The notes under the pieces are model-generated. The model did not search any database. It was not told the DNA's origin and saw only the letters and a program-made list of their open reading frames with translations. A stretch of DNA of 64,000 nt, taken from positions 1-64,000 of the IMG/VR virus record IMGVR_UViG_3300044680_000280; one strand, given 5' to 3'. Made by a program: the position numbers and the translations under genes. This document shows, one piece after another, positions 2,713 to 45,323 of this stretch (within the stretch, counting starts at the first letter, position 1; each line of letters opens with the position of its first letter).

Positions 2713-3981
2713 TTACACCGAGCGGCGGAGAACGGCCCGAACGGCTTCCCTGGCGGTACGATCGGACGCGACTTTGACGTCAGGCATGATGAGATTCAGC
2801 CAGTGTTTGACGATGGGCTGCACTGTAGCTGGACCGTACCCGACCAGCAAACCCATCACCTCGCAGAATGATTCTTCAACGTTCTTTCCACCGTAACCCG
2901 TGATGGGATGCTTGACGGTAACGAACTTGACCCCATCAGCAAGAAGCTTCTCGAAGTCTTCCCTCGTATTGAATTCAACTCCGCCCGATCGCGCTTGCCC
3001 GTGAGCTATGACGTCAACTTGAAGGGCTAAGAGTGGGTCCACGTCCACGAGTTTTTCTACGAGTTCATGAGCCCAAGCGCCTTCTGGCCAGACCTTCAAA
3101 AGCTTGTCAACGTCAAGAGGTTCGGCATCGTCGCTAATTGCTTTTGACCAGAACGTGCGGTCCGCCTCGCTCAGGTACACCTTGTAGATGTGGTGCCCCA
3201 TTTCATGGGCAATAACGTGAGCCACGATATTTGGATTCTTGTGATCAAAGAACCCGCCCATAGCGATTTCAATATGATCCCCCTCATACCTACCGCCCTC
3301 GCCCATGGTAACATATGCATTCAGTCGAATGGGCAGCATATGCTGTAGAAGCCAGGGAAATACCTGTTTTGCACGGCGTCGAAAAACCCTAAGTCCTTCC
3401 TTGAAACGTTCCAAGAAGCCGTCTTCGTCATTCTCATACCCGACGACTGAAACATGAAAGCCCTCCATCTCGACTTTCTCAGTGTCCCGGGTTTTCACCG
3501 TGTAGTTAGGGGTGCCCGTGACTCGTTCTCGGTATTCCACGAACTCCTTCATCTCTTTCCAAAAGAGCCGTGCCTTCTCCTTTACCTTGGCTGCCCACTT
3601 GTCCTTCTCCATTTCGAAGCTGGCAAACAACGACTCCTGAGACTGAGGATTGTACTTGCTATCCGGGTACCCAAGAGGGAGATTGAGTTCAATTGAAAAA
3701 TCCCACCCGGTCTTCCGAAGCTTGTCACCGTACCACTTACGGTCCGATTCAGAGACCTTGTCATCATACTTGAAGTCGTGATTGAGAAAGGTCTCGAAAA
3801 CGATATGGTCGAAGTTCTTACGAAAGGCTTTGACACCGTCCCGAACCTTGTCCGCATCCTTGTAGCTTTTGATGCGAGGAATGTTCTTCATGAGTGTGAG
3901 AAAGTCCTTACGCAGGTTCTCAATCCACTCGAGGTCCAACGTGATGTCCTTCGCCACTCGGCGATCATAGCTGTACGTCAT
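2713..3981 (-). CDS. zincin (HExxH) metallopeptidase, anthrax-lethal-factor-like, with YDRR leader
   Basis: VIAHEMGHHIY plus downstream GYGGKNVEESFCE; N-terminus MTYSYDRRVAK; C-terminus KVASDRTAREAVRAVLRRSV. Confidence 0.7.
   Translation of the reverse strand: MTYSYDRRVAKDITLDLEWIENLRKDFLTLMKNIPRIKSYKDADKVRDGVKAFRKNFDHIVFETFLNHDFKYDDKVSESDRKWYGDKLRKTGWDFSIELNLPLGYPDSKYNPQSQESLFASFEMEKDKWAAKVKEKARLFWKEMKEFVEYRERVTGTPNYTVKTRDTEKVEMEGFHVSVVGYENDEDGFLERFKEGLRVFRRRAKQVFPWLLQHMLPIRLNAYVTMGEGGRYEGDHIEIAMGGFFDHKNPNIVAHVIAHEMGHHIYKVYLSEADRTFWSKAISDDAEPLDVDKLLKVWPEGAWAHELVEKLVDVDPLLALQVDVIAHGQARSGGVEFNTREDFEKLLADGVKFVTVKHPITGYGGKNVEESFCEVMGLLVGYGPATVQPIVKHWLNLIMPDVKVASDRTAREAVRAVLRRSV
2714..2720 (-). 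promoter_or_regulatory. CGGTGTA upstream element
   Basis: 10 nt before ATG 2703; overlaps the upstream TAA. Confidence 0.6.
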
Positions 3982-4310
3982 ACCGCCTCGTCAAGGAGTA
4001 GGTCGTCCGAACCACGCTCGTCGGACTCGTCAACAAGAAAACCGCCGTGCATCCCCTCATGAACTTCTCGGTGGCAGCGGCAGCATAAAAGCACGCACTT
4101 TTCGAGCTCGGGGCGGATACGTTCCCAGGAAGTCATTCGGTCCGAAATCGTGAAGTCTTTCTCGAGCGGATTCACATGGTGAAAGTCAAACGCGGCGGGC
4201 GTCCCATCATAGGTACATATCCTACACCGACCGCCAAGGTGGGCTACCGCCATCGCCCGTAAATCAGTCCGGCGTTTGTGCGCCGCTCGCCTCTTCTCCC
4301 AAGCTCCCAC
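3978..4310 (-). CDS. HNH endonuclease family protein
   Basis: GGRCRICTY...FDFHHVNP...ELEKCVLLCCRCHREVH; probable GTG start at 4310 (the ORF track extends to 4394). Confidence 0.8.
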   Translation of the reverse strand: MGAWEKRRAAHKRRTDLRAMAVAHLGGRCRICTYDGTPAAFDFHHVNPLEKDFTISDRMTSWERIRPELEKCVLLCCRCHREVHEGMHGGFLVDESDERGSDDLLLDEAV

Positions 4311-4317
4311 GAGGAGG

Positions 4318-4324
4318 CGGTGTA
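4318..4324 (+). promoter_or_regulatory. CGGTGTA upstream element (plus strand)
   Basis: 11 nt before the rnhB ATG; orientation flips with the gene. Confidence 0.65.
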
Positions 4325-4335
4325 ACAAGAGGACT

Positions 4336-5046
4336 ATGGCGGATCTTGACCCACGGAAGGTCGCGGAATATAAGGCTCGAGCCGAAGAGCTCATCCGTGA
4401 ACGGTCCCCGGATTACCTGATCGGCGTGGATGAGGTCGGCTACGGACCAATCGCAGGGCCGGTCGTAATCGGCGCCGTGGGCGTGCCCGTCGATTGGACG
4501 CCACCCACGGGCCTTACTGACTCCAAAAACCTCTCCAGAAGGCAAATAATAACCTTGGCGGGGGCGTTCTACGACGAGGTCCTCTCACGGGGGATTGGGA
4601 TCAAGTACGCCCTTTTCTGGGGCGACTCCGAAGAGATCGACAGAGACGGACTCGGAAAGGTCCGTAAGGGACTTCTTCAGTCCGGGGTGGAGTACATCCG
4701 GAGCACGTATCTCGAAACGGAGCCTTTCACCACTCTAGCTATCGTCGACGGCAATCTCAACATTCCGAATGCGGTCAGCATCCCGAAAGCCGATCTTGTG
4801 TGCCCCGTGGTGTCCATGGCCGCCGTCCTTGCCAAGTGCGCCCGTGACACATGGATGATCAACGTCGCGGCCAAAAAGTACCCGGGGTACGGTTTTGAGG
4901 AATCTGTCGGATACGACACACTCGAGCACCGCAAGGCGATCAAGGCTCTAGGTCCGTGTCCGATCCATCGGATGAGCACCCGGACCTTGAAAGAACGAGA
5001 CGTCTGGTCTCAACTCCCCAATCTAGGGAGAGGGGGAAAGTCATGA
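4336..5046 (+). CDS. rnhB: ribonuclease HII
   Basis: IGVDEVGYGPIAGPVV, DSK, VDGN, KAD...SMAAVLAKCARD, GY.T.EH...GPCPIHRMS. Confidence 0.93.
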   Translation: MADLDPRKVAEYKARAEELIRERSPDYLIGVDEVGYGPIAGPVVIGAVGVPVDWTPPTGLTDSKNLSRRQIITLAGAFYDEVLSRGIGIKYALFWGDSEEIDRDGLGKVRKGLLQSGVEYIRSTYLETEPFTTLAIVDGNLNIPNAVSIPKADLVCPVVSMAAVLAKCARDTWMINVAAKKYPGYGFEESVGYDTLEHRKAIKALGPCPIHRMSTRTLKERDVWSQLPNLGRGGKS

Positions 5047-5900
5047 AATCCTTGATCAAGTGGGTCGGTGGGAAGACACAGCTCCTGCCCGAGCTGCTCC
5101 GTGTTTTTCCCAAATCCATTGAGAACTACTACGAACCGTTCCTCGGGGGAGGTGCTGTCTTCTTCGCTCTGGCTTCCTCCAAAGAACACCCGTTCGTAAT
5201 GGCACACCTGAACGATCTCAATGAAGAACTGGTCAACACGTACACTCAAGTCGCACATGACCACGAACGATTGTGCCTCCTGCTCACCCAGTGGAAAGAG
5301 ATGTACCTGAAGGATCCAAAGACCTTCTACTACGACGTTCGAAAGGACGACCCCAAGACGATGCTCCCGCTCGACCGGGCGGCTCGGTTCATCTTCCTCA
5401 ACAAGACGGGTTTCAACGGGCTCTACCGCGTAAACAAGTCGGGCGGGTTCAATGTCCCGTGGGGCAAACACGAGAACCCGACCTTGTTTGATCAGGACAA
5501 CATCGAGGCATGCTCCCGCGTTCTACGAAAGGCCAAAATCACCTCGGGGGACTATACAAGGATTTTGGACCGGGCGGGCATCGGAGATCTCGTCTACTTC
5601 GATCCTCCGTACGTGCCCCTCAACCCAACCTCAAACTTCACATCGTACACCTCGGACGGGTTCACTATCGAGAATCAGAAGCAGCTCGCCAGCACCTTCA
5701 GGGAGCTCTCAGACCGAGGCGTTCACGTCGTGCTGTCCAACTCGGATACCGAAGTCATCCGAGATTTGTACAAGGAGTTCGCCATTTTGACGATTTTCGC
5801 CCGTCGAGCGGTCAACAGCAAGGGGAGCGGCCGAGGACCCGTGAACGAAGTTCTGGTCTTGTCGAAAACGGCATCCGAAACTTTTGAGGGGACGATCTAA
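5043..5900 (+). CDS. dam: DNA adenine methyltransferase (Dam/D12 class)
   Basis: KWVGGKTQL, YYEPFLGGGAV, NKTGFNGLYRVN, VYFDPPY; ATGA overlap with rnhB. Confidence 0.93.
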   Translation: MKSLIKWVGGKTQLLPELLRVFPKSIENYYEPFLGGGAVFFALASSKEHPFVMAHLNDLNEELVNTYTQVAHDHERLCLLLTQWKEMYLKDPKTFYYDVRKDDPKTMLPLDRAARFIFLNKTGFNGLYRVNKSGGFNVPWGKHENPTLFDQDNIEACSRVLRKAKITSGDYTRILDRAGIGDLVYFDPPYVPLNPTSNFTSYTSDGFTIENQKQLASTFRELSDRGVHVVLSNSDTEVIRDLYKEFAILTIFARRAVNSKGSGRGPVNEVLVLSKTASETFEGTI

Positions 5901-5901
5901 G

Positions 5902-6138
5902 ATGGGTAACGAAGAGAAGGGCACTTTTGGTGCCTCATGCGATGGCTCGGTTCTGTTAGCCGAGCCTCAGTACGACGTGGACGGCACCATCCTCGACAAC
6001 GGCATCCAACTAATAGGAAACGCGACTAGGCAGTCGAACGGACTCTATACGTCTCTTGCCAATGTGAACGGCTCTTTATGTACCGTTGAGTTCAAACTGA
6101 CAACAGCGATTAGACCTTCGGTGGTTTCGGAAACTTGA
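5902..6138 (+). CDS. hypothetical protein
   Basis: ATG 1 nt after the dam stop codon. Confidence 0.5.
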   Translation: MGNEEKGTFGASCDGSVLLAEPQYDVDGTILDNGIQLIGNATRQSNGLYTSLANVNGSLCTVEFKLTTAIRPSVVSET

Positions 6139-6478
6139 GCAGAGCATTCCGGGTGAGTAGGTCATAGAGAACGGGCTCAAGGAAACTGACCACCATCTCC
6201 TCTCGGAACCATCGAGTCTCGAGCAAGTTGCCTCCCAGTACCGAATACTTTATGTCCCCGGAGTGTGGGGAGAAGCACACGTGCAGTAGCTCGTGCAGAA
6301 GTTTCATCTTCATAAAGTTGTCGTCTGGGCCCCAGGTGACCTCAATGCAATTGTTGTCCGAGTCGTAGAGAGCGTCGGCCACATTGCCGTCATCATCCTT
6401 GAGGACCCACTTGACGACGTAAACCCGGAGTTCGCCGCGTTGGGTCTGTAGCTTCACCCATATACGACGACCCCTCAT
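6110..6478 (-). CDS. small HExxH zincin-like protein
   Basis: LLHELLHVCF followed by EEMVV; start trimmed to ATG 6478. Confidence 0.6.
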   Translation of the reverse strand: MRGRRIWVKLQTQRGELRVYVVKWVLKDDDGNVADALYDSDNNCIEVTWGPDDNFMKMKLLHELLHVCFSPHSGDIKYSVLGGNLLETRWFREEMVVSFLEPVLYDLLTRNALLKFPKPPKV

Positions 6479-6486
6479 GACGGCCC

Positions 6487-6669
6487 CTAGGACGTTCGCT
6501 TGTTGTGTAGGGCCAGGATAATGACGGAGAGCAGAGAAATGCTCGCGGCGGTAAAAGTCACTATTGATAGCGTGTGCTCGGATGCGTGTGCCGCCACAGC
6601 TACGCCGATCGCAACCACGTTCCCTAGGTTTAGTCCCCCACAAAGCCCGGCTACCTCTCGTCGGTCCAT
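6487..6669 (-). CDS. small membrane protein
   Basis: 60 aa with two hydrophobic segments. Confidence 0.5.
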   Translation of the reverse strand: MDRREVAGLCGGLNLGNVVAIGVAVAAHASEHTLSIVTFTAASISLLSVIILALHNKRTS

Positions 6670-10104: not shown

Positions 10105-11495
10105 TCGGGCTCTTCTGTGGGTACGGGTTCAGGCGCCTCGGGAGCTTTACCCGTCTTGACAACACTCTTGAGCCACTCGGACGGTTCTGGTTTTAGATGA
10201 CCAAGAATGTAGGTGGTCATCATCTCTGCAAAATACTCCATGTGGTTCTTACGGGCATAGTTCGTGGGGACCCAATCATGTAGATGGGTTTTGTAGTCAC
10301 TCCGTCCTTCGCCACTCTTTATGAGGGAGGACAACTCTACGTAAACCGTATGCCTTTCTTCCTCAACCTTTTTGAGTTCCGCCTCTTTGGCTTCGTCTTT
10401 ACCAGCATAGGTAAGGGAATCGACGGATTCAGGCACAATTAAGGGTCCAGGGCCTCGTCGGTAGATTTGCTGACGCTTGATATAAGCCTCTGGGGCGTCA
10501 ATGACCTCCACGTTGACAGTGCGACTATCCGCCTTACCAACGATGCGACCCTTCACATGGTACTGCACACCATTGACCCACGTATCGTATTCAAATACCT
10601 GTCCCTTGCGTGGCAATGGCTTTCGCTTGTTTTGCTCCTCACTCAGTCGGGAATACGCTTCATTCAGAGCCTTCATTTTTCGGTTCAGAATGTCAACCTT
10701 GTTGCTTTTACCGGTCGACTTCTGACGAACAGCCCACATGTGCTTACTGATGATTGCTGAGTTATTAATTCCACCTGGCACCACCTTATCGTGGCAGTAG
10801 TGTCCAAGCTCATGAATGACCGTATGGATAAGTTTAGGATCCTCGTAGGACTTCGGTGCAAACTGAATGGTAGGAGGCACACTACCCATTGTGTAAAGTG
10901 CGCCGGCATGGGAAGCACCTCGCCCGCTTAGTACAGACGAAATATCGTGAACGATGGGGACACCAGCAGCGGCGTACATACGCTCCGCTTCCTCGAGCAA
11001 AGCACCCAGCTTGTCCACGTGTTCTTCGTGCTGCTTCAGATAAATCACCTTGAATCGACCAAACTTCTTCTCGAGAACTACGGACGCCGCATAGCGCTCA
11101 ACGACTCGTTCGGCAGCCGTCTTCTTCTCTTCTTCTTCGGGGTCGGGCGGGTCGGGGTCGTGCCAGATCTTGTAGAGACCCATGATCTTGTTCTTTTTGC
11201 GGCCTTGTGGGACTGGACGAATCTCAATCATCGGGTGTCCACGATCATCGGCCCAAATGCGCTCGATGATGCCGTGCTTGTTCTTGTACTTCCCGAATAC
11301 AATTTCGTCCCCGGGGGCGAAGAACCCCCTGGCGATCAAAACTCGTGCGGCAACTCTGGCTGAGATTGCGTCGGTCGGAGCGACGTCGTCGTAGATTACG
11401 TCCTCAAGACCGTCCTCCCCCGAGCATGCGCTCATGGGTTGGCTACGGCACCACTCGAGGGCGGCGATGCCCCACTCAGGATCAATATCGTTCAT
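10101..11495 (-). CDS. multidomain protein: small beta-barrel module plus HExxH metallopeptidase
   Basis: VIHELGHYCH and NYARKNHMEYFAE; internal motifs RVAARVLIA and KKTAAERVVERYAAS; ATG 11495 overlaps the upstream stop. Confidence 0.7.
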   Translation of the reverse strand: MNDIDPEWGIAALEWCRSQPMSACSGEDGLEDVIYDDVAPTDAISARVAARVLIARGFFAPGDEIVFGKYKNKHGIIERIWADDRGHPMIEIRPVPQGRKKNKIMGLYKIWHDPDPPDPEEEEKKTAAERVVERYAASVVLEKKFGRFKVIYLKQHEEHVDKLGALLEEAERMYAAAGVPIVHDISSVLSGRGASHAGALYTMGSVPPTIQFAPKSYEDPKLIHTVIHELGHYCHDKVVPGGINNSAIISKHMWAVRQKSTGKSNKVDILNRKMKALNEAYSRLSEEQNKRKPLPRKGQVFEYDTWVNGVQYHVKGRIVGKADSRTVNVEVIDAPEAYIKRQQIYRRGPGPLIVPESVDSLTYAGKDEAKEAELKKVEEERHTVYVELSSLIKSGEGRSDYKTHLHDWVPTNYARKNHMEYFAEMMTTYILGHLKPEPSEWLKSVVKTGKAPEAPEPVPTEEPE

Positions 11496-12913
11496 CCTTG
11501 ATTCCATAGGGTGGTGGCTTCAGCACAATCGACATCAGGACAGAGATAAATGGCGTAGGCTGCCAAATCGTGAAGCCAGAACTTGCCCTCATCATGATTG
11601 TCGTACAGGTGGCACACAGCATCCCCGCCCGGCTTCTCCTTGATGGTAATAGCTAGCCTGGCATCCTTACCACATTTGAAGCACTTCGTAGTGGGGTCAA
11701 ACTCGGCCTGGTACGTCAGCCCCGTACCAGCGGGACCGTACCCGACATCCAAACCGCCATGCTCGGCGGCATAGCGGGCAGCAACTTTGAGGGTGAGCTT
11801 ACTCATAGTGGCTTTCTTTCGGATCAAGATGCGGTCACCACCACTATTCATCAATGCAATTTCAGGGTCCCCAAGACGGTTGGGGTGTTGGGCATAAAGA
11901 GAAACGGGGCGGTCTCCAATGATGAGCTTAACAGTAACAGTCCTATCCCCTGTCCGTTGATATACGTCGGCTACGGTAGCGCTCGAGTGAGCTGGAATGT
12001 TTAGTCCCCGAGAACCCTTCTCAACGAGCACACGATCTCTAGGCTTGAGAGAGAAGTCACCACGAATCTTGTTTGGGTCCTCATCCTGCTCAAAATGCTT
12101 TTCGTACTTTTTCTTTCGGAGTAGGATTTGGTAGGAGGTGGGCACGGGTTTCCCTGGCCGCAGGCGAATTCCAATCTTAGCTGTTTCGATCGCATCGTCC
12201 TTCGTCGGGGCGTCATTGACTATGACTCGATCATCATTGAGAATGACCTGCCACTTACCATCGGTCAGCCAAACCCGCACATCATGATCCAGAATGGAGC
12301 CCTGGTATAATTGCGGATTTATTTCTCGCAGGTCCACATCCTTCTTGGGTCGCTTCTCAACGTAATTTCTAGCCTCTTCCGTAGAGATTGGGTCCATCTG
12401 ATGATTTGAGTGCACGACGAATAGGTCGACATCCTCAAGTCCGACAATCATCGAGCACCCTAGTCCAAAACAGCAAGCGGAGTCTTCCATGACCCCGGAT
12501 TGATGAGGTGGCCCGTTCGGGTCAAAGGGCACCTTTGGATTCAAATGGTGAAATCGGACGCCCATTGCGTCCAAACGAGCGAGGAAGAGATCGTCTCCGT
12601 ACCGTTTTCCCCTGAGTTTATTCCCTATTTCAATGACTTCCGTGATGTTGTGCCCCCAAGACGCTCCGTGAGTTCGTTCCGCCTTGGCTGAGTAAGTCCC
12701 GCCCGTAATCCTTCCCGTTCGCAGAATACGACTCAACTCCTCCCCATCAAAAATGCGATACATTTTCACCGGAGACTCAAACGTACCGACGATTTGATCT
12801 GTCATCGATGGGAATTGCTGACGAGCTTTATTCGTGGCGTCACGATCTATCGTAATTTTGATAGCATTCGCTGACTTCCACCTGCTCAAAACTCGAAATT
12901 CGATGCGATCCAC
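11492..12913 (-). CDS. multidomain hypothetical protein with RV-x-x-R leader and C-terminal Cys-rich module
   Basis: Probable GTG start 12913 (MDRIEFRVLSRWKSA); internal MSKLTLKVAARYAA; C-terminal CFKC...CPDVDC. Confidence 0.65.
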   Translation of the reverse strand: MDRIEFRVLSRWKSANAIKITIDRDATNKARQQFPSMTDQIVGTFESPVKMYRIFDGEELSRILRTGRITGGTYSAKAERTHGASWGHNITEVIEIGNKLRGKRYGDDLFLARLDAMGVRFHHLNPKVPFDPNGPPHQSGVMEDSACCFGLGCSMIVGLEDVDLFVVHSNHQMDPISTEEARNYVEKRPKKDVDLREINPQLYQGSILDHDVRVWLTDGKWQVILNDDRVIVNDAPTKDDAIETAKIGIRLRPGKPVPTSYQILLRKKKYEKHFEQDEDPNKIRGDFSLKPRDRVLVEKGSRGLNIPAHSSATVADVYQRTGDRTVTVKLIIGDRPVSLYAQHPNRLGDPEIALMNSGGDRILIRKKATMSKLTLKVAARYAAEHGGLDVGYGPAGTGLTYQAEFDPTTKCFKCGKDARLAITIKEKPGGDAVCHLYDNHDEGKFWLHDLAAYAIYLCPDVDCAEATTLWNQG

Positions 12914-12924
12914 ACCTACCCAAC

Positions 12925-13638
12925 CTATCGAAAGAGCACCGTTCCAGGGGGGAGAATAAGGGTAATGAGCCAATCAACGGCAGCTTCTCGATCGGCAAAC
13001 TGCGGAAAGAAACGGGAGATACTCCCTACGTTAACTGTCTGCTCATCGAAGAGACGCACCGGGCACCCCGACTCGCACTGCCATGATGGTATCGTTTCCT
13101 TCCCATCGGCATCAGCGTGCCCCCTCCAGGCACCCGTACGAGTCGTTGCAGTGCCCTTCTGGGAGAACTGAGACGAGCTACCCCCTGGACCGTTCGGGTA
13201 TCCCCTGTGACCGTCCACTCTAGTATAACCCGGCTTGCATTCTGGGGAGTGAACAAAGATTATATTTGGTGGCCATCTACCAAGGGGAGACGGTCCAGCA
13301 AATTCGGACTCCGTGCGGAAGTGACCAAGTTGTCCCCCATTCATAATGCCTGAAAACTTGTCGGACGTACGCACCGTCATCTTCACCGGCTCGTTGTGTC
13401 TGATCCTACATGCGTCGATTTGAAGTGCCCCGGTACCAGTCAATATGGCCTGATCGATGACCGTAGGCGACGTGAGAGTCTTCCTACAAAGCAAAATGCA
13501 TTCAGTCGTGGGCCCAGGCTTCAACAGATGGATAGTATCATGAATATGGTGACCGTCCTTCCGCACTTGAATCGCACTGTCTTCGTCGCAATTGTAGACG
13601 AAAAAGTAAGCACCAGCGGAGAGGTCTAAGGGAGCCAT
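12925..13638 (-). CDS. DNA methyltransferase-related fragment lacking catalytic motifs
   Basis: GTGALQIDACRI, GRWPPNII and SISRFF resemble the central segment of phage N4/N6 MTases; no DPPY and no FxGxG. Confidence 0.6.
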   Translation of the reverse strand: MAPLDLSAGAYFFVYNCDEDSAIQVRKDGHHIHDTIHLLKPGPTTECILLCRKTLTSPTVIDQAILTGTGALQIDACRIRHNEPVKMTVRTSDKFSGIMNGGQLGHFRTESEFAGPSPLGRWPPNIIFVHSPECKPGYTRVDGHRGYPNGPGGSSSQFSQKGTATTRTGAWRGHADADGKETIPSWQCESGCPVRLFDEQTVNVGSISRFFPQFADREAAVDWLITLILPPGTVLFR

Positions 13639-15240
13639 TCAGAGCATACCCTGTAACATCATTGCCATCTGTTCCTTAGACCTGCGTTCCATGGCTTCAT
13701 GAGTCTGATCATAATTGTAGGGCACAACCAAACCTGGAAGCAGAGGGGAGTTGCCCAGTGAGAGGGTAGTTTCTATTTCGACGATTTGGATTTTCGGGAT
13801 ACTGTAGGAATCACCCCTACACTCAAGTACAAGACTACCACTATTAAACGCTCGGACACGCATGCTGTCTGTAATTGAGTCCCGAAAAGCGAAGTATAAC
13901 CCAGCTTTATGCTTCGTCAGAACGGTTGCAACGAAGTTGCCGAAATGATCGGAAATGTTGGCGCCGCCGGTGACCTGAACCACAAATCTCACTGGTCCCG
14001 CGAACGTGAGTAGCTCCAACGTTCCATCGATACCACCGTCCGCGCTCTTCTTTCCGCTATGACGACCTTTGATTTGGCGTACCACCCATCGCTCGAGAGC
14101 ATGCGGGTCAGACTTGGCCAAGTAACGGGCGTCCTCGATGTCCGAGGGGTATACATTTTTTTCACAGCACGTGCCGAACTCTTTGTAGATCCTCTCAAAA
14201 GCGACTTTTGCGGATTTGTGGGTGAGTTCGAAGCCTAACCATTGACGTCGGAGTCTTTGTGCCGCAATGGCAGTCGTGCCACTTCCCAGAAAGGGGTCCA
14301 ACACGAGATCTCCGGGATTGGAAAACATTTCGATCAAACGAGATATCAATCCCACAGGTTTCTGGCCTACGTAATTGGGGACCCTCTCCCTCGAGAAATA
14401 TGACACGTACGGTATGTCAGTCCACAGATCCTGTACCACCACCCCCTTGTGCTCATCCAAGAACCGTTTAATTCTGACTACACCTTTAGGTCGTTTTGGA
14501 TCCTGAAGTCGACCAAGTCGATCAAGCTCCTCCATTCTCTCTTTAGAGAATCTCCATTGCCGAAAAACTCCCTTCCATTCGTAGGAGTACCCACCTCCAT
14601 CGAGGCCATTGGCGGTAGGGTTATCTAAAGAGTACAATCGACCGTTATCATCCTTGTGTCGGTAGTGCCTCTTGATCCTTGCTTTCAGGCCTTCAGGAAG
14701 GTACTGGTTATAGGTGTAGGAATGAGACTTTGAGTAGATAAGGATCGTATCGTGCATTGCCCCAGGTCGATGTCCGTCACTGTGACCATTCGACCGTTTC
14801 CATACGATCTCAGAAACGAAATGGTCCGCTCCGAAAATAGCATCCAAAACCTCGCGCAAACGATGTGAGTACGTGGGACTACAATGGACCGCGATCGTAC
14901 CAGTGGACGTGAGCACGCGATGACACTGGATCAATCTAGGCCCCATCCGAAAGATATAGGCCAAAGAGTCCGGATCGGCGCATTGACGTATGTGTTCGTA
15001 ATAGCTCCACAAGCGAATTTCAACCGGGCTCTTGTTGACTTTCTCTTCGAATTCGCGGTAGTCCCTCATATCCGATTCCGACCACGACCACGTGTCTTGG
15101 TACGCTTTCTCGTGGGCTTCGCTATCATCGATGAGGTTGTGCCTTTTCCCTTTTCCGAATGGGGGATCCGCATAAATGAACTGGATAGTTAACGCATCCA
15201 ACTCTTCTAACAGAAGTAAGTTGTCACCTGTTTTGATCAT
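13639..15240 (-). CDS. N4/N6 DNA methyltransferase fused to a Mrr-like restriction-endonuclease-fold domain
   Basis: IYADPPF, GQKPVGLISRLI, VLDPFLGSGTT; C-terminal SADGGIDG...VVQVTGG. Confidence 0.85.
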   Translation of the reverse strand: MIKTGDNLLLLEELDALTIQFIYADPPFGKGKRHNLIDDSEAHEKAYQDTWSWSESDMRDYREFEEKVNKSPVEIRLWSYYEHIRQCADPDSLAYIFRMGPRLIQCHRVLTSTGTIAVHCSPTYSHRLREVLDAIFGADHFVSEIVWKRSNGHSDGHRPGAMHDTILIYSKSHSYTYNQYLPEGLKARIKRHYRHKDDNGRLYSLDNPTANGLDGGGYSYEWKGVFRQWRFSKERMEELDRLGRLQDPKRPKGVVRIKRFLDEHKGVVVQDLWTDIPYVSYFSRERVPNYVGQKPVGLISRLIEMFSNPGDLVLDPFLGSGTTAIAAQRLRRQWLGFELTHKSAKVAFERIYKEFGTCCEKNVYPSDIEDARYLAKSDPHALERWVVRQIKGRHSGKKSADGGIDGTLELLTFAGPVRFVVQVTGGANISDHFGNFVATVLTKHKAGLYFAFRDSITDSMRVRAFNSGSLVLECRGDSYSIPKIQIVEIETTLSLGNSPLLPGLVVPYNYDQTHEAMERRSKEQMAMMLQGML

Positions 15241-21541: not shown

Positions 21542-22371
21542 GGTATCACCACAAGACCCTTCGTGGAGTTCGACTTCTTCGGGGACAAGGACTTGTCCGA
21601 GGCATAACAGTAGCCACAAGATAGGGTGCACGATTCGTTGAAAGTGAACGGGTCGACCATGATGGCACAGCCACATGATTCGGATTGGGGTTTTGGCTCA
21701 CCCTCGCAGGGAACACATACGCCAGCGGATAGATTTTGCTGGGCCCCCAGGCCATCCAGGGAGTCCTTGTAAACGTTGCAGAGGCGAACCCTTATACGGT
21801 AGGCATCCGCAATCTGAGCCAATTCTCGCATGATTTGGAGACATTCCGTGGCGCTTCGGGTCTCTGGAATCATGTCGTTTGGTTGTAAAAAGGACAAATA
21901 GACGGAGTTCGTCTTCCCTGTCATCCGAGAGGCAATGGACTCGAAACGTTGGTACAAGCTTCGAACCGAGCTTAGAATCGGAACGGGCGAGAACCGCCAT
22001 GAAAGGTTCTCTCTGCCCACAAGATCCGAGAGGTTCGAAGCCCACTGCGTCGCGGTTTCGATGTTGGGCGCTCCCCGTTCCACTTCCTCCCAACCCGTAA
22101 TCGTCACGTGAACCTTGACCTTGTAGGCGGACAGTAAAGCGTAATCGGCGACCAAGTTCTTCGGGACTTTGGTCCAAAAAACCAGGCTGTGCGTTTCTTC
22201 TGGCGCTAAAGACCACCAGTCGGGAACGCCCGTGCGAACGTCGAATGCTTGCATTTTCCCAGAGAGCAGACTCGCCCGAAACCAATCCCATTTAGCTCCC
22301 GGGACATCGGTCCACCGCGAAAGGCTGTAAGGTACAACCTCAGCTCTACCAGAACGAAGAATCGGGGTCAT
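21538..22371 (-). CDS. DUF1848-like (radical-SAM-related) protein
   Basis: SLSRWTDVP, VFWTKVP, WRFSPV, CGC...DPF..NESCTLSCGYCYA. Confidence 0.75.
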   Translation of the reverse strand: MTPILRSGRAEVVPYSLSRWTDVPGAKWDWFRASLLSGKMQAFDVRTGVPDWWSLAPEETHSLVFWTKVPKNLVADYALLSAYKVKVHVTITGWEEVERGAPNIETATQWASNLSDLVGRENLSWRFSPVPILSSVRSLYQRFESIASRMTGKTNSVYLSFLQPNDMIPETRSATECLQIMRELAQIADAYRIRVRLCNVYKDSLDGLGAQQNLSAGVCVPCEGEPKPQSESCGCAIMVDPFTFNESCTLSCGYCYASDKSLSPKKSNSTKGLVVIP

Positions 22372-23249
22372 CCCTCAGAAGATACACCAGCGGCGTCTTC
22401 GAGGGCTTCCCTAATCGTATCCGGATCCAAATCTTTGAGTGCTTTCGCCGAAATGGCGGCGATGAGAGCCTGAAAAACCTCATCCTGAGTGGGGGGCCGG
22501 TCGTCTTTCGACGCGAGGCGCTCCATGAGCTTTGAGACCAGCTCGACCGAGTGGTGACCGATCTCCCCAAACTCGTGTAGAGTGGGTAGGTGCTGTAGGT
22601 GCTTCGTGACCGCTTTGACCGCGATCTTCTTTGCGGTAGAGCTAACGAACGAGCTCATCACGCCCTTCGTGATGGCAACGGCGCCCGCTCCAAGACCGAA
22701 CCCCGCCCCTAAGGCCCCTGAAACTGCCGCAACCGTACAGTGGATGGCCACTTCCCGTATGGCGTGCTTTTGCTTCTTGGAGACTTCCTTGCCGGTCATC
22801 CAAGCATGGATGCCCTCGCCCGCCTCCTTGAACTCCTTGACCTCATGTTTGGCTACATTGTAGGCACTCTCGACGTATTTCATCGGGGCGCTCAGAATCG
22901 ACTTGTGCGCCTTGAGTAGAGTTTCTCGACGATGATCCTCATCATCAACGAATTTTTTGACGGTCGACGGGGTCTTGTGGAGGAACTCCTGGGCCTTCGA
23001 GGACAGACTCTTTGCCAGGTCCTTCCAAGTCAACTTAGGCCCGGCACCGTGTTCGTGCTCATCGTGCTCGACACCGTGACCTCCGTCCGTCTTCTTTTCA
23101 GAAATCTCCCCCGGCTTCTTGACCGTATGATTTTTCGGGTCCGCCTTGGGATGTTCGTGCAGGTAGTCCTTCAGCGCCTTTGGAGTCGGAAACTCGAAGG
23201 CGAGCTGGTAACGAGCCGCCACACGCAGACTCAACACGTCCCTACGCAT
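22368..23249 (-). CDS. hypothetical protein with RVAARY leader
   Basis: MRRDVLSLRVAARYQLA; Gly/Ala hydrophobic segment VAAVSGALGAGFGLGAGAVA. Confidence 0.75.
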   Translation of the reverse strand: MRRDVLSLRVAARYQLAFEFPTPKALKDYLHEHPKADPKNHTVKKPGEISEKKTDGGHGVEHDEHEHGAGPKLTWKDLAKSLSSKAQEFLHKTPSTVKKFVDDEDHRRETLLKAHKSILSAPMKYVESAYNVAKHEVKEFKEAGEGIHAWMTGKEVSKKQKHAIREVAIHCTVAAVSGALGAGFGLGAGAVAITKGVMSSFVSSTAKKIAVKAVTKHLQHLPTLHEFGEIGHHSVELVSKLMERLASKDDRPPTQDEVFQALIAAISAKALKDLDPDTIREALEDAAGVSSEG

Positions 23250-23250: not shown

Positions 23251-24465
23251 TCAGACCTTGGTGTACTTTTTAGCGAAATGCATGAGGTGGTCGTTGACGA
23301 ACTCTTCAGTGTCGATGTTCCTGTAATCGGACGACCACATGGAACGGGCCTCTCCGAAGTTGTTCACCTTAGGGCCGGCCGAGTAGTAAATGGCCTGCGG
23401 CTTGAACCAGAATCGGAAGTCTCCGTGGGGCGACACGGCGTACGGGATTTTCAGGTGATCGGTAACCCTCCAGCCCTTGGCCTTAAGTGATGCGAAAATC
23501 GCGTCCTGAGCCTGCTTGAAGGTCTTCTTTGCTTTGACCCGAGGCTTCTTCTCCCTCAGGGGATACGCGTCTACCTTCGGTCCTGGCTTCAGTCCCACTT
23601 GACGCATATAGTCCAAATTGATGATATCAGGTAGCTCATCGCAAAGGTCGAAGATGTCCTTGAAAACGTTCGTAACCTCGTGAGACTCAGAGGCGACCCG
23701 AGCGAAAAGCTGGCGCTGACCCTGAAGAAGCCTCTCGAGCTCGGTCAGATAGGTGCGAACCGAGTGAAGAGCTTCCTTGACCTCTTCACCCTCGAGCGTG
23801 GTGGCGTGTGAGAATCCTCGTAGCGCATGCCCCTCGATCTCTTTTGCTCGATGTTGCTCTTTGGCGGGAAGGTCGTTGACGAAGGGTTCTAGGCTCATGA
23901 TGAGATCACGAAACGTATCCGTGGCCTGAGGACCGGTCCTAATGTTCCAGGTCTTTGCCTTTTTCCCTTTTTTCTTATCCTCTAGCTGAAGCGTAACAAT
24001 GGCTTGTTTGGCAATCCGCTCGGGATCCATACTATGCTCGTCCCGAAGTTCGCGAAGGTCACCGACAAGACGATAGTACGTCGACGTAAACGAGGCTTCA
24101 CGTCCCATCGCCAATCGCACGGCGGCAACCGCTTCGGGGTCCTTATCGGGGAATCGAGACGAAGCCTCTGGGGCTGGGGGCGACAAATCGTCCGTCTTCA
24201 AGAGCTCGTTTTGGACTTGGTCGGCTTCCTTTTTTCCGCCCGGCTTGTCACCCTTGTTCTTCATCGACCAAGCAAGTGCCCACGGGTTATCGATCTCATC
24301 GTGTTTTTTCATCTTTTTGACGGTATTCTCCCACCCAGGAGGGGCTACCGCGAGGTGTTCGTCAAGAAGCGGATCTTGCGCCATGGGCCCGGGACGGCTG
24401 ATTGACGCCTCTTCCTCTTGAGTTTGGGCGATTCGTTGAGCAACACGAAGAGCTAGCTTGTCCAT
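23251..24465 (-). CDS. modular hypothetical protein with RVAQR leader
   Basis: MDKLALRVAQRIAQ; internal RLAMGREAS, RIAKQA, RVAS. Confidence 0.75.
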   Translation of the reverse strand: MDKLALRVAQRIAQTQEEEASISRPGPMAQDPLLDEHLAVAPPGWENTVKKMKKHDEIDNPWALAWSMKNKGDKPGGKKEADQVQNELLKTDDLSPPAPEASSRFPDKDPEAVAAVRLAMGREASFTSTYYRLVGDLRELRDEHSMDPERIAKQAIVTLQLEDKKKGKKAKTWNIRTGPQATDTFRDLIMSLEPFVNDLPAKEQHRAKEIEGHALRGFSHATTLEGEEVKEALHSVRTYLTELERLLQGQRQLFARVASESHEVTNVFKDIFDLCDELPDIINLDYMRQVGLKPGPKVDAYPLREKKPRVKAKKTFKQAQDAIFASLKAKGWRVTDHLKIPYAVSPHGDFRFWFKPQAIYYSAGPKVNNFGEARSMWSSDYRNIDTEEFVNDHLMHFAKKYTKV

Positions 24466-24493: not shown

Positions 24494-25213
24494 CTAGAGA
24501 AGTAACCCGGCCTCATCCAGAGCCATATACACGGCTTTCAAAATCTTGGCCTTACTTTGAGGGTTCATGTAGTCCCGAACCTTCTTCCAAGTTTCACTGA
24601 GGTCCACGACGGCTTCTACGAATTGGTGAGGTCTCCCCTTGTACTGCTTTCGCAGGAGGTAGCGGTTCGCGATGTCGAGGCATTGCGAAACAATCTGCTG
24701 CATGTACGCCCGCACCTCATGGGCTTGGTTGAAGTATGCGTTGCGCTCTTCTGGGCTCTCCTTAGGGTCCACAATCTCGTGGGGGAGAAAGCGACCTTCG
24801 GCCGCATGGGTTAACTCGTGAATGAGCACCTTGAAAATATCCGCTGAGACTAGGGGCTGATTTTCAGGATCCGCAAAGTCCCCGAATGTTTTCGAGCCGT
24901 TAATGTGCACCCATATTTCTCGTTTGACAACCGAGTACATCCCACCCACGGTAAAGGAAGTCGACTTGCTAAGAGTGCTTTCGAATAGAACCGGAATGGT
25001 GATGAAGTCGCCCCCGATTACCCAGACGCTGGTTTCCTGATTGTCGAAGATTTTGGCATGGCGACCGACAACCTGTTCCGACGGGAAATGAGCCGTGTAT
25101 TTTGTGATGTAGTGGGCTATACGGTCGGAATCTCTCTTAATCGCCCCGTGGTCGAGAGGAATTGGCCGGGCTTGAATAAACCTGGCAGCGACTCGGAGCG
25201 TGAGAACGTCCAC
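24494..25213 (-). CDS. HExxH metallopeptidase-like protein with RVAARF leader
   Basis: GTG start MDVLTLRVAARFIQA; LIHELTHAAE; YFNQAHEVRAY. Confidence 0.7.
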   Translation of the reverse strand: MDVLTLRVAARFIQARPIPLDHGAIKRDSDRIAHYITKYTAHFPSEQVVGRHAKIFDNQETSVWVIGGDFITIPVLFESTLSKSTSFTVGGMYSVVKREIWVHINGSKTFGDFADPENQPLVSADIFKVLIHELTHAAEGRFLPHEIVDPKESPEERNAYFNQAHEVRAYMQQIVSQCLDIANRYLLRKQYKGRPHQFVEAVVDLSETWKKVRDYMNPQSKAKILKAVYMALDEAGLLL

Positions 25214-26570: not shown

Positions 26571-26855
26571 TCACTCGATGCCCTCGCCCGCAAGAGCCTT
26601 GCTCTTGATCTCGCTCGCGAGCTGCTTTTTCAGAGCCTCAACCTCCTCCGAAACCATCACTGACTTAGCTAGGTGTTTAGCTCTGTACTCTTCTCCATCC
26701 ATGATGGCCCGAAAGTAAGCCTTGGCGATGATGGTCTCGAAGGAATCGTCGGGGAGTTTGGCAACGAGACGCGCCGCCGCCTGGCGAACCTCGGGTCCGC
26801 TCAGGATGGTGAGCCGCTCGGCAACTCGGGCTGCAACTCGATCGGCGATGCTCAC
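26571..26855 (-). CDS. small protein with RVAARVAER leader
   Basis: GTG 26855 overlaps the nitrilase TGA; MSIADRVAARVAERL. Confidence 0.6.
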   Translation of the reverse strand: MSIADRVAARVAERLTILSGPEVRQAAARLVAKLPDDSFETIIAKAYFRAIMDGEEYRAKHLAKSVMVSEEVEALKKQLASEIKSKALAGEGIE

Positions 26856-27625
26856 TTCTTCAGCTCCGCGTACACGATGCAATCTTCGGACCATTTGAGT
26901 CCGTCACAATGAACTTTACCACTTTTTTCGATGACGCAAACGCCACCCTCACCAAAATCGTTGTTTGCTTCCTTTCCCCACACGTTGGAGACAGCGAGTG
27001 CCGTTTGATTCTCTTCCACAAAGTCCATCCATCCGTTGGCAGGCACACCCCCGTCACCCCAGGCACTAACCATTAGAACCAGATCCGCATCCCCAGGTTC
27101 ATAAAAGCTGTTCCATTTGTCGTCTTTTTTGTCCCTTACGTCACGGCAAATAAGCAGACCAATCTTCCACTGTTCCCCATCTATTGTCGTGCGAATTACG
27201 GGAGGGTTGCTTTGGCCCCGACCGGCCCAAATGTAATCGTTACCAAAAGGGCAAATCTTTCGATAACTTTCATGGTATCCGTCCGGACCAATGAAGACCT
27301 GCGAATTGTAGAGCTTGTTGGTACCCAAATCGACCTCAACGAAGCCGAAAGTAATGGTCACCTGAAGATTGCGAGAGATTGACAATGCTCGACCCATCAT
27401 TGTACACGGGCTTACCCCGTTCCAATCGTCTAACCACTGGGGACTCTCTGCGAACGGGCGAGCCTCCTCCTCTGACATGAAAGAGTACCCGGTAGTCGCC
27501 AACTCAGGAGCGCATATTACTTTTGCCCCGTTCCTCGCTGCCTCAACAATCAGTGCGGACAACCGCTCGATGTTGCCCTTCTTATCCTTGAACGTAGGCT
27601 TGAATTGTATTACGGCGACACGCAT
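26852..27625 (-). CDS. carbon-nitrogen hydrolase (nitrilase superfamily)
   Basis: MRVAVIQF, PELATTGY (E), YRK (K), LICRD (C): intact catalytic triad. Confidence 0.9.
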   Translation of the reverse strand: MRVAVIQFKPTFKDKKGNIERLSALIVEAARNGAKVICAPELATTGYSFMSEEEARPFAESPQWLDDWNGVSPCTMMGRALSISRNLQVTITFGFVEVDLGTNKLYNSQVFIGPDGYHESYRKICPFGNDYIWAGRGQSNPPVIRTTIDGEQWKIGLLICRDVRDKKDDKWNSFYEPGDADLVLMVSAWGDGGVPANGWMDFVEENQTALAVSNVWGKEANNDFGEGGVCVIEKSGKVHCDGLKWSEDCIVYAELKK

Positions 27626-41351: not shown

Positions 41352-42257
41352 TTAGTGCCTCCATTTTTTATTGGGGCTGTTTCGCCTGCCGTACTTCGTC
41401 TTCTTTGGCTTGTGCTCCAACACCATGAGGGACTCTTCCACTGAGAGGTCTGATGAAACCACCTCGTCCTCATCAGATGTGACCATCATGTCGGGCTCCT
41501 CTTCAATAGAACCCGTAATCGGATCGGACTCCCCTGACTGCATAACGGTCACGGGCGACGAAACATACTCTTTATCGTCGCCCGTAGTAAGGTCGAACTC
41601 CTCAAAATGATCGTGAATGTACCCAGCGGTTTCCTCACTGTAGGAGTAATTTCCCTGAAGCGTGCCGTCAATCATGACGGCAGTGTACGGGTTGTCAGGT
41701 TCCTCAACGAGCCAGGTCGGTTTGTTGTTGACCTCACGAATCATGAGAGCTTCTTTCAAGTAGCCGGCCGCCGCGATATTTTTGTGGCCGAGCTTCCCAA
41801 GACGAACAATGACGAGGTCTGGATCCTCAAGCAGGTCATAGAGAGAGTCGTAGAACTGATGCTTCCCGTCCTCTCTTTCCGATCTTGACTTGAGTATGGC
41901 GGACTCCTTTCCGAGTCGAACATTGAGAATCCGCTCATCCGTGACGATACGGAACCTGAAGTTCAGCCCCTTGTAGAATAGGGTCCACTTCAAATGTGGC
42001 AGAAGAGTGCGCCAGGACGACTTGACGAACATGTTCTGCTTGGTCAGATCAACGGAGGGCCTCCGACGGACCGCACCAAGGACATAAAATGGGCTGCTCT
42101 TCACATTCTCGGCCGCTAGAATCTCAGGACCCAGGTGAGTCCTGAACATACGGCGCTTACCGCAAACGCAAAGCTGCACATGCAGGTCATCGATATCGAT
42201 GACCCCTTTTCCGCCGCATATCTCGCAAAGGGGCTCGTCCTCAAAGAATGTGGGCAT
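41352..42257 (-). CDS. DnaC/IstB-like helicase-loader homologue with degenerate ATPase motifs
   Basis: CEICGGKG...CVC zinc motif; PDLVIVRLG at the Walker B position; R...KPTW; no GxxGxGKT. Confidence 0.55.
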   Translation of the reverse strand: MPTFFEDEPLCEICGGKGVIDIDDLHVQLCVCGKRRMFRTHLGPEILAAENVKSSPFYVLGAVRRRPSVDLTKQNMFVKSSWRTLLPHLKWTLFYKGLNFRFRIVTDERILNVRLGKESAILKSRSEREDGKHQFYDSLYDLLEDPDLVIVRLGKLGHKNIAAAGYLKEALMIREVNNKPTWLVEEPDNPYTAVMIDGTLQGNYSYSEETAGYIHDHFEEFDLTTGDDKEYVSSPVTVMQSGESDPITGSIEEEPDMMVTSDEDEVVSSDLSVEESLMVLEHKPKKTKYGRRNSPNKKWRH

Positions 42258-42266
42258 TAGGACTCC

Positions 42267-43985: not shown

Positions 43986-43996
43986 CGGAAGCCACC

Positions 43997-44003
43997 TACA
44001 CCG
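43997..44003 (-). promoter_or_regulatory. CGGTGTA upstream element
   Basis: 11 nt before the SNF2 ATG. Confidence 0.6.
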
Positions 44004-44009
44004 AGATCG

Positions 44010-45323
44010 TCACCCCAGAACGGGTAAAAGGAGATCCATCTGTTCCTTGGGGAGCTTCCCGATGGCGTAGAAAGACACCATCTCAGCGAAGTTCTCCTCA
44101 GGGCCGCCCCGCTTGGCGTACGAGGTGATGAAGTCCAGAAAACCAGTCGATGCCAATGGCGTCCCTTTTAACTCAAAGAACGTAGTCACGGGCATCGTGT
44201 AGACGCTAATACGCCCGTCTGGACGAGGCGTGGGATCCTGAAGCTTCACGGATTTTCGTCTGAAATCTCGGTCCGTCACCTTGAGTTCTACGCCCTTGTA
44301 TAGAAGGGTGTCTCCCCTCTCAGGATAATCTTTGAAGCTCGGGCCACTGACTTTGGAGTGGACGCTGATCGTATTGTAGATCTTGACGATCTCGCTTTTT
44401 TTGGAAGACAGAAACTTTTCGCAAAGTCGGTGCGTGAGCTCGTGACAGACCACTCGAACCGTGTCCGTAGTCATTTTGGCATCGGCTCGGACGAACATCT
44501 CATCCTTAGAGGGGAGGTAGAACGCAGCGATCCTCTCCCCAGACAGGCGGTTCGTAATAAGGACGTCGCCATAACAGACTTTCCCCAAACCAATCCCTTC
44601 CATTTTGAGGGCGGCTTCCTCACACAGACGAGCCTTCTCTTCCATCAACTTCGTGTCAAACCCACCCGTATTGACCACGACGAAGGGTCCAGCCTTGAAT
44701 CTAGTAACCACGTCCCCCGTATCCGAGTGGCTCTTCCCCGAAGTCAGGGCTTCCATAAATAACTTTTCGTGCTTACGGAAGAGTTCCAGATGCTCCAGAT
44801 AAAGTTCAGTGCGTTCAACGTACATGTCCTCAACTGTCTTACCCCTCGGGAGACGGATGTTTCGGGCCCAAAATTTGGACGCGACCTCGATGGACTTTCG
44901 CAATTTGGGCGAAAGGACCATCTGTTGTAGGATGGCAAGGCAAAGAAGACGTGCGGTGTCCTTCAAACGGTCGAACCCATGCTGCTGCATGTGTATCGAG
45001 ATGGCGGCCCCCTTGTCGCTCCACTGCCTGGAGGATGGGTCACGGCCATCCCTTTGAGCTTGGAGTTGCTCGATTCTTTCACGAACTGCTTTGTAAGCCT
45101 CGTGGCCAGCCTCTGGTTTGAGCTCTTCTCGAGTTTTTACAATCTCAGCATGAAGGCGCAGGTACTCCTTGGCATCGGCTTCTTTCTCTGCGTATTTCGC
45201 CACGCCGATCCTGAAGAGGAGGAGAAGCTCCTTCGGGTCGCCGATGGAGTCCCCACGCTTAGTCCGTTCTGCTACACGGATTGCGAGTTGATATCGCTCG
45301 GCGACTCGAAGCGAAACGTCCAT
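44010..45323 (-). CDS. HExxH metallopeptidase (lethal-factor-like) with doubled RVAER leader
   Basis: MDVSLRVAERYQLAIRVAERTKR; VCHELTHRL; SYAKRGGPEENFAEMV. Confidence 0.75.
   Translation of the reverse strand: MDVSLRVAERYQLAIRVAERTKRGDSIGDPKELLLLFRIGVAKYAEKEADAKEYLRLHAEIVKTREELKPEAGHEAYKAVRERIEQLQAQRDGRDPSSRQWSDKGAAISIHMQQHGFDRLKDTARLLCLAILQQMVLSPKLRKSIEVASKFWARNIRLPRGKTVEDMYVERTELYLEHLELFRKHEKLFMEALTSGKSHSDTGDVVTRFKAGPFVVVNTGGFDTKLMEEKARLCEEAALKMEGIGLGKVCYGDVLITNRLSGERIAAFYLPSKDEMFVRADAKMTTDTVRVVCHELTHRLCEKFLSSKKSEIVKIYNTISVHSKVSGPSFKDYPERGDTLLYKGVELKVTDRDFRRKSVKLQDPTPRPDGRISVYTMPVTTFFELKGTPLASTGFLDFITSYAKRGGPEENFAEMVSFYAIGKLPKEQMDLLLPVLG

Follow-up and report, generated by a model that had tools for sequence, protein, structure and literature searches.

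Five minus-strand open reading frames (ORFs) with the HExxH signature of zincin metalloproteases lie in the window analysed here, the whole 64,000-nucleotide stretch taken from positions 1 to 64,000 of IMG/VR virus record IMGVR_UViG_3300044680_000280. An earlier note on this DNA had described all five, four of them bearing a short motif, here called the tag, and all five translate as it described. P0001 (2713..3981, minus strand, 422 residues) has the tag YSYDRR (3958-3975), of the form designated B below, and a gluzincin domain with HEMGH at 3193-3207 and YGGKNVEESFCE at 2860-2895. P0002 (10101..11507, minus strand, 468 residues) carries the tags RVAAR (11343-11357) and RVVER (11094-11108), separated by a small beta domain and followed by a gluzincin domain with HELGH at 10800-10814 and YARKNHMEYFAE at 10224-10259. 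The HELGH frame had been identified correctly, but its start had been placed at 11495, an in-frame ATG four codons downstream of 11507, where the frame opens. P0003 (44010..45323, minus strand, 437 residues) also has a double tag, RVAER at 45294-45308 and again at 45264-45278, ahead of a helical bundle (residues ~25-200) and a lethal-factor/PPEP-like gluzincin domain (~208-437), in which HELTH lies at 44430-44444 and Y402...E410-N-F-A-E414 (EENFAE) at 44082-44120. P0004 (24494..25213, minus strand, 239 residues) combines one tag, RVAAR (25181-25195), with a compact zincin domain containing HELTH (24806-24820) and YFNQAHEVRA (24707-24736). The smallest, P0005 (6110..6478, minus strand, 122 residues from its ATG), is indeed an untagged mini-zincin, with HELLH at 6281-6295. 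The four tagged HExxH proteins are real, but the set was drawn too small: outside the window, at positions 116037-116885 (plus strand) of the 156-kb viral contig G000, lies a tagged 283-residue protein with HELGH...YSKKEGEGFAE, the sixth HExxH zincin and the fifth that is tagged.

The window corresponds to the minus strand of positions 45151-109150 of this contig, and its proteins are also encoded on contigs of 463,523 bp and 406,734 bp, the latter being IMG/VR UViG_3300044680_000280, with a CheckV completeness estimate of 85%. The genes shared with these two contigs identify the source as an uncultured huge phage. Its GC content is about 54%, the minus strand of the window carries nearly all genes, nothing broken was seen in the zincin genes, and the standard genetic code suffices. 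Megablast against the cultured-phage collection found no match to the window DNA; tblastn searches of the same collection gave no match for P0002 and, for P0003 and P0004, a single match to an uncultured 485-kb phage.

The active-site residues are conserved throughout the families. P0003 has 163 homologues, many of them on contigs of 300-570 kb, and the 93 that were aligned all retain H294, E295, H298, R299, Y402, A403, E410, N411 and E414. For P0002 (28 homologues), H232, E233, H236, Y417, E424, A427 and E428 are invariant in the 23 aligned, and for P0001 (30 homologues) the invariant residues are H259, E260, H263, H264, Y363, K366, E369, E370, F372 and C373, with E374 nearly so. For P0004, clustering at 50% left 329 representative homologues, and 78 stand-alone members share invariant H132, E133, H136, Y160, N162, E166 and A169. 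An estimate from residue frequencies predicts fewer than one HExxH by chance in the coding content of the window, and since the His and Glu of the motif and the downstream Tyr and Glu are invariant in the four family alignments, the motifs are not fortuitous. Candidates for the third zinc-ligand Glu on the downstream helix are E410/E414 (P0003), E424/E428 (P0002), E370 (P0001) and E166 (P0004), the putative zinc-binding Glu being read off the alignment with lethal factor. The predicted catalytic sites of all five window zincins are intact.

Kinship and predicted fold of the zincins

In Pfam and PHROG scans none of the five proteins had a significant match, pairwise BLAST among them detected no significant similarity, and the kinship of P0001 to P0003 is visible only at the profile level. 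When family profiles were aligned with hhalign, the P0003 family matched the P0002 family with 97.9% probability (E 6e-13) over the entire catalytic domain, including the beta insert between the two active-site helices, and the P0001 family with 96.3% probability (E 1.7e-9). These profile alignments show P0001, P0002 and P0003 to be mutually homologous members of one gluzincin superfamily. The out-of-window zincin is grouped with them as a gluzincin of the lethal factor, PPEP, MtfA and Mx1 kind, in which HExxH lies on one helix and the Tyr and third zinc-ligand Glu lie on a later helix, in Y-x3-N-x2-E-x-F-A-E. P0004 belongs to a separate compact zincin family, and its candidacy for the lethal-factor-like superfamily was not supported, the profile-profile probability being 42%. 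The proposal that the tagged HExxH proteins are of the lethal factor type therefore stands for P0001 to P0003, on profile kinship, motif collinearity and, for P0002 and P0003, fold matches, and is not borne out for P0004.

The zincin fold was judged from AlphaFold models for P0003 and P0002 and from ESM Atlas neighbours for the other three proteins. The P0003 model (predicted local distance difference test, pLDDT, 92.6; predicted template modelling score, pTM, 0.83) consists of a low-confidence N-terminal helix (residues 3-22), a helical bundle (~25-200) and an alpha/beta domain (208-437), while the P0002 model (pLDDT 78) is of high confidence within the catalytic domain. Both were subjected to exhaustive structure alignment (VIA-align) against 48,161 chains, with an aligner whose typical best Z is 7-8. 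Residues 208-437 of P0003 matched the catalytic domain of lethal factor (1yqy_A, Z 9.3) and the lethal-factor-like N-domain (6psn_L, Z 9.4), followed by PPEP-2 (Z 9.0, 18% identity), PPEP-3 (Z 8.6), the Mx1-family structure 4l7a (Z 7.8) and the MtfA-like 3dl1 (Z 7.6). The top match of the P0002 model was lethal factor (1yqy_A, Z 11.1, 178 residues), then M1 aminopeptidases and PPEP-3, and both models also matched M1 and M30 zincins. In keeping with the likeness put forward in the earlier note, lethal factor and PPEP are thus the best or near-best solved-structure matches of P0002 and P0003 (Z 9-11). Foldseek searches of the PDB with the full-length P0003 model gave weak matches enriched in collagenase, lethal factor and M1 (E > 0.04); single-sequence PDB searches with the zincins returned only noise, and profile searches against the PDB were non-significant. 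The assignment carries weight because the matches agree across the two models.

In the ESM Atlas, the feature neighbours of P0001 include clusters carrying M90, ATLF and Mx1, and those around P0004 are viral clusters together with LPD23 and M78-type zincins. P0005 is an ImmA/IrrE/SprT-like mini-zincin; its Atlas structures show template modelling scores of 0.68-0.69 to phage clusters of ~120 residues, some of which carry PF06114 or PF10263 (ImmA/IrrE, SprT-like).

Comparison of the P0002-family profile with a lethal factor fragment in HMMER paired LiHElgH with FIHEFGH and TtYsRknkvEwfAE with TSYGRTNEAEFFAE, in collinear order and at a non-significant E of 0.92. The motif Y-x3-N-x2-E-x-F-A-E is collinear with lethal factor in P0001 and P0002 and one residue longer in P0003; we take the Tyr and the first Glu of EFFAE in lethal factor to be catalytic Tyr728 and zinc ligand Glu735. 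The likeness to lethal factor is a superfamily-level resemblance, not membership of M34/ATLF. When every member of each family was scanned, 56 of 93 P0003 homologues matched PF15890 (Peptidase_Mx1) at E <= 0.01 (best 4e-8), which marks the P0003 family as a divergent Peptidase_Mx1 branch, P0003 itself scoring 14.2 bits against a curated cut-off of 25.6. The P0001, P0002 and P0004 families showed no consistent match to any Pfam family.

Lethal-factor-like zincin modules are already known in phages as a kind. In the polyvalent proteins described by Iyer et al. (2017, PMC5512222) the zincin MPTase is a hub domain, linked to lethal factor by HHpred, for which polyprotein processing or attack on host proteins was proposed; polyvalent proteins are thought to be delivered into the host upon infection, with the DNA (PMC5512222). 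P0004-type domains occur alone (~250 residues) or within proteins of 735-2068 residues, and in the long fusions 2-4 HExxH sites are combined with SprT-like, topoisomerase IB and 2H-phosphoesterase domains. Homologues of P0001 and P0002 are fused to topoisomerase IB (Topoisom_I) or to HAD_SAK_1, the HAD domain of RNA-repair proteins. These architectures suggest that the window zincins are stand-alone, unfused equivalents of the MPTase modules of polyvalent proteins.

The N-terminal tag

To describe the tag, a consensus was built from 121 homologue N-terminal segments. Form A reads M-x-L-A-x-R-V-A-A-R-[FY]-L-x-A and begins at the initiator Met; form B reads Y-x-Y-D-R-[RTQ], as in Y-x-Y-D-R-R. 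The form A scoring matrix found 12 sites in the 156-kb contig against none in reversed sequences, and form B gave 18 matches in the fetched loci against none. Over all fetched homologues, form A occurred at 180 sites against 2 in the null, 137 of the 180 falling in the first 30 residues; the others lie mostly at fusion-protein junctions, with a few at the extreme C-terminus. Orthologues of P0001 and P0002 carry either form at the same position, and mixed forms such as YSYDRRMAAR suggest R-[VTM]-A as the shared core. In the models of P0003 and P0002, proteins with two copies each, the tag is predicted as a helix of low confidence that stands apart from the domains. Taken together, these results show the tag to be a real, transferable, short N-terminal amphipathic motif that marks the starts of modules, including junctions within fusions.

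Literature searches for the motif strings found no relevant description, and preprints on huge phages mention only ArdC and unrelated proteases; targeted term searches of the text of PMC5512222 found neither the tag, nor its two forms, nor an association with ClpX. The stand-alone tagged form, the two-form motif, the three families that lack a Pfam model and the ClpX association treated below thus appear undescribed, as far as these searches reach.

Zincins are five of the roughly 13 tagged proteins of the contig (~40%). The remainder include two enzymes of the effector type, a 2H phosphoesterase and a P-loop kinase-like protein, besides a 493-residue ORF and several proteins without a known domain. 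Within the window these are a protein of ~95 residues directly upstream of ClpX (26571..26858, minus strand), with the double tag RVAAR-VAER, no known domain and a position beside ClpX that is kept in relatives; a 404-residue protein (23251..24465, minus strand; RVAQR at 24433-24447) and a 293-residue protein (22368..23249, minus strand; RVAAR at 23211-23225), both without a known domain; a 91-residue ORF (45841..46116, minus strand) with the form-B tag YFYDRR (46090-46107); and the 493-residue ORF (11492..12973, minus strand), in which an internal KVAAR (11774-11788) separates an N-terminal domain without assignment from a Cys-rich C-terminal domain of ~100 residues that probably binds zinc. 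An in-frame ATG lies three codons upstream of this internal tag, and the ORF could be a single two-domain protein or two genes. Outside the window, the 2H phosphoesterase (contig positions 115021-116040, plus strand; two HxT motifs) has the tag ALRVAARY at residue 184, followed by a 159-residue Cys-rich C-terminal domain; lying between the two parts, the tag marks a domain junction. Across the low-coordinate edge of the window (contig ~107.8-109.7 kb, minus strand), a 635-residue frame opens with a tag-like IALRVLRRVLA segment; it has a kinase-like domain with the P-loop GPPAAGKG and, near residue 519, another tag-like site. The small beta domain of P0002 (residues ~62-100, GDxIxFGKYKNKxG...), situated between its two tags, recurs as the N-terminal module of the otherwise different tagged proteins P0146, P0148, P0150 and P0151.

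Tags inside fusion proteins raise the prospect that the zincins act in processing, cutting polyproteins upstream of each tag to set individual modules free, with the tag as cleavage or recognition site; in this phage, where the modules are already separate genes, it would be retained as a handle. Domain-junction tags are found, for example, at positions 8, 17 and 276 of one fusion, 7 and 265 of another, and 179, 436 and 455 of a third; tag-bearing fusions usually hold at least one HExxH domain; the large zincin share among the tagged proteins of the contig fits as well; and autoproteolysis of polyvalent proteins by the MPTase was proposed by Iyer et al., citing P1 DdrB (PMC5512222). In the stand-alone proteins, however, the tag begins at the initiator Met, which leaves nothing there to cut off, and many polyvalent homologues with several HExxH domains are untagged. 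We consider processing quite unlikely as the role of the tag.

In some relatives the tag stands only 13-17 residues before the stop codon with nothing after it (P0149, at 627 of 639; P0327, at 863 of 876), and further near-stop tags occur in the L024 ORF that starts at 7398 and the L039 ORF that starts at 5976. These could reflect use of the motif at the C-terminus, a frameshift or recent gene fission.

It is also conceivable that these are ordinary housekeeping or regulatory zincins, acting in crosslink repair, repressor cleavage or virion maturation with no shared programme, and that the tag is a structural helix. The resemblance of P0005 to ImmA/IrrE/SprT mini-zincins is of this kind, jumbo phages carry SprT-like and other zincins whose role is not established (PMC7824862), and the location of the genes among those of DNA metabolism would fit a DNA-linked role. 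Against this, the fold comparison of the P0003 and P0002 models shows P0001 to P0003 not to be SprT-like or ImmA-like, and the tag, which occurs on unrelated folds, swaps form among orthologues and is modelled as a detached, low-confidence helix, is for these reasons unlike a structural element. This explanation is very improbable.

ClpX as a candidate reader of the tag

Directly upstream of P0004 lies a ClpX homologue, P0330 (25237..26523, minus strand, 428 residues), with GYVG (pore) and LGF loops and the domains zf-C4_ClpX (an intact four-Cys N-domain), AAA_2 and ClpB_D2-small. The small double-tagged protein lies on one side of it, P0004 and two further tagged proteins on the other. The 406-kb record yielded no ClpP. 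Eight of ten tag-using huge-phage records encode a ClpX homologue (47-56% identity).

In eight other phages, a 16-kb locus with ClpX at its centre was examined; 12 tagged ORFs fell within 3.2 kb of ClpX and five further out (binomial P 0.026; Poisson P 2.6e-4 against the background density of this contig), the eight loci not being fully independent because the phages are related. Five of the eight loci have a zincin of these families beside ClpX, and two of these show a P0003-type zincin directly after ClpX and one of the out-of-window type before it. Double-tagged orthologues of the out-of-window zincin lie directly upstream of ClpX in two huge phages (L084, 5734-6726; L085, 5351-6295). The neighbouring zincin types differ between loci. 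ClpX-P0004 synteny was discarded as a general rule, being restricted to a close clade; the broader pattern is ClpX beside some tagged gene or zincin.

Two side observations concern the ClpX genes of relatives. Small tagged proteins of 86-110 residues occur directly upstream of ClpX here and in two distant relatives (L089, 6926-7186; L091, 8626-8958); the three are not obviously homologous, and the slot could be a recurring adaptor-like position. In L084 (6736-9078), ClpX has 780 residues, with ~350 extra residues between the N-domain and the AAA+ module that may be an intein or an inserted domain.

A docking peptide that binds the ClpX N-domain is known from Escherichia coli, where the XB peptide of SspB, RGGRPALRVVK, docks the adaptor on ClpX (PMC3983244, PMC8808172). 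Its end, ...PALRVVK, shares with the tag, ...LALRV[A/V]xR, the core L-R-V-[V/A]; the XB motif is C-terminal, whereas the phage tag is N-terminal or internal. A complex prediction with a dimer of the ClpX N-domain and the first 30 residues of P0004, run without controls, scored 0.01 and counts neither for nor against binding. Gene neighbourhood and this short resemblance make the phage ClpX, in our view, the best current candidate for a reader of the tag.

The zincin genes lie among replication, methylase and nucleotide-metabolism genes. Those identified in the region encode a family A DNA polymerase, DnaB and SNF2 helicases, AAA ATPases, methylases, a deoxynucleoside monophosphate kinase, HNH and GIY-YIG nucleases, a nitrilase-like hydrolase, DUF1848 and a DHH-type protein. 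An SNF2 ATPase adjoins P0003, with a weak PBECR2-like match beside it; the SNF2 helicase was rejected as a conserved partner of P0003, since adjacency recurs in only 3 of 49 other loci, all in close relatives. The two DNA methylases present are a D12-class Dam methyltransferase at 4956-5900, the sole identified plus-strand gene of the window, and a second of the N6_N4 type at 13639-15240 (minus strand). Seven ORFs follow one another at positions 46778-63961 (minus strand). The five large ones (1450, 797, 1021, 657 and 1302 residues) have no Pfam match and only marginal PHROG matches, and the GC and AT skews of the segment are mostly opposite in sign to those of the remaining window. These ORFs could encode structural or fibre proteins, or giant proteins of another type. 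Outside the window, the contig also encodes (137416-138897, minus strand) an untagged 493-residue ORF with HEAGHALYE, a further metallopeptidase, the motif being, we presume, typical of M32 carboxypeptidases.

This setting bears on the possibility that the tag is a capsid-targeting sequence like that of T4 internal proteins, the zincins being packed in the head and, as the earlier note proposed, ejected with the DNA to cleave host defence or regulatory proteins. No recognised structural gene adjoins the zincin genes, which lie among genes of replication, methylation and nucleotide metabolism; no similarity of the tag to a known capsid-targeting sequence was found; and packaging alone does not predict tags clustering around ClpX. 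Yet the zincins have relatives among the modules of polyvalent proteins, which presumably enter the host with the DNA, and the N4 virion RNA polymerase has a lethal-factor-like MPTase in the region required for its encapsidation (PMC5512222). A weak BFVD match links the zincins to N4-like virion RNA polymerase and 'minor capsid' proteins, and a short, transferable N-terminal motif on ~13 unrelated proteins resembles a packaging signal. Particle preparations of phage G contained ClpX and ClpP (PMC12484599), and for that reason packaging and recognition by ClpX need not exclude each other. Packaging as the principal explanation strikes us as rather unlikely.

The reading that we prefer is a joint one: the tagged zincins are intact and are likely intracellular proteases, and the tag is an address for which the phage ClpX is the best candidate reader. 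Several points weigh against it. The fold matches are moderate, with Z of 9-11 on predicted models where the aligner usually reaches 7-8 at best and with Foldseek E values above 0.04, and none of the five proteins matches Pfam ATLF (PF07737) at E up to 1. Protease activity is deduced from conserved residues and predicted folds. The ClpX link is drawn from gene neighbourhood and a five-residue resemblance, the clustering around ClpX is modest and confounded by common descent of the phages, no ClpX appears in two tag-using records (68% and 92% complete), and in this phage P0001, P0002 and P0003 sit 14-22 kb from it. Balancing these points, we put the probability of the joint reading at about 0.6. 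Its broadest extension, that RVAxR/YxYDRR is a docking or degron signal routing a dozen or more enzymes via the phage ClpX across a huge-phage clade, is possible, if doubtful.

Under this preferred reading, the zincins most likely would act as proteases inside the infected cell, cutting proteins of the host, tagged partners encoded by the phage, or both. A single shared partner, presumably the phage ClpX, would recognise the tag as an address; the zinc-binding N-domain of this ClpX is, by analogy, of the kind that binds the SspB peptide in E. coli. Docking might lead to timed turnover via host ClpP, to unfolding for translocation or packaging (virion loading), or to adaptor-like recruitment. 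In the broader, doubtful extension it could also tether the proteases to the unfoldase, yielding an FtsH-like arrangement from separate parts. The client set in that extension would include several of the lethal-factor-like zincins along with a 2H phosphoesterase and a P-loop kinase, and the 'arsenal' of proteases seen in the earlier note would be the clients of a viral AAA+ machine.

To our knowledge, no domain is commoner in phage polyvalent proteins than the zincin module, and we know of no such module with a demonstrated substrate. Here they are small separate genes with intact predicted active sites, deep alignments and, for P0003, a high-confidence model; as separate genes they are far easier to express and assay than fusions of 2000 residues. 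By their shared N-terminal motif, proteins handled alike by the phage can be recognised as a group, and the motif provides a sequence handle for listing that group in thousands of huge-phage genomes. If ClpX does read the tag, this would explain why huge phages carry ClpX without ClpP and would reveal a virus-encoded protein-addressing system; if the tag is instead a packaging signal, the injected proteome of an uncultured phage group would become identifiable from sequence alone.

Comparison with known systems

As a short N-terminal peptide that is transferable and found on unrelated phage proteins, the tag recalls the capsid-targeting sequence of T4, from which it differs in sequence, the two sharing no similarity; nothing found here points to packaging of the tagged proteins or to their cleavage by a prohead protease.

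The MPTase modules of polyvalent proteins (Iyer et al. 2017) share with the window zincins the HExxH motif and the Glu on a later helix, their carriage by phages and a profile-level kinship to lethal factor. Such MPTase modules occur together with SNF2, DNA methylase, 2H phosphoesterase and nuclease domains; here, as a loose match, an SNF2 gene adjoins P0003 and methylase genes are nearby. Unlike those fusions, the window modules are separate genes of 240-470 residues, each preceded by a short N-terminal motif.

Mx1 and MtfA proteins (PF15890, M90) resemble P0003 in structure (4l7a, Z 7.8; 3dl1, Z 7.6), and M90 and Mx1 also appear among the Atlas neighbours of P0001. In contrast to the phage zincins, Mx1 proteins are bacterial, often lipoproteins, and untagged, and the P0001 and P0002 families have no PF15890 match.

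With lethal factor (M34, ATLF) and PPEP-1, -2 and -3, P0002 and P0003 share the predicted gluzincin fold at Z 9-11, and the signatures of lethal factor and the phage proteins, xIHExGH and T-x-Y-x-R-x-N-x-x-E-x-F-A-E, are collinear. Identity to lethal factor and PPEP is just 13-18%, and the phage domains carry a beta insert between the active-site helices. The phage zincins have other N-terminal domains, are cytoplasmic and carry no secretion or toxin-delivery domain.

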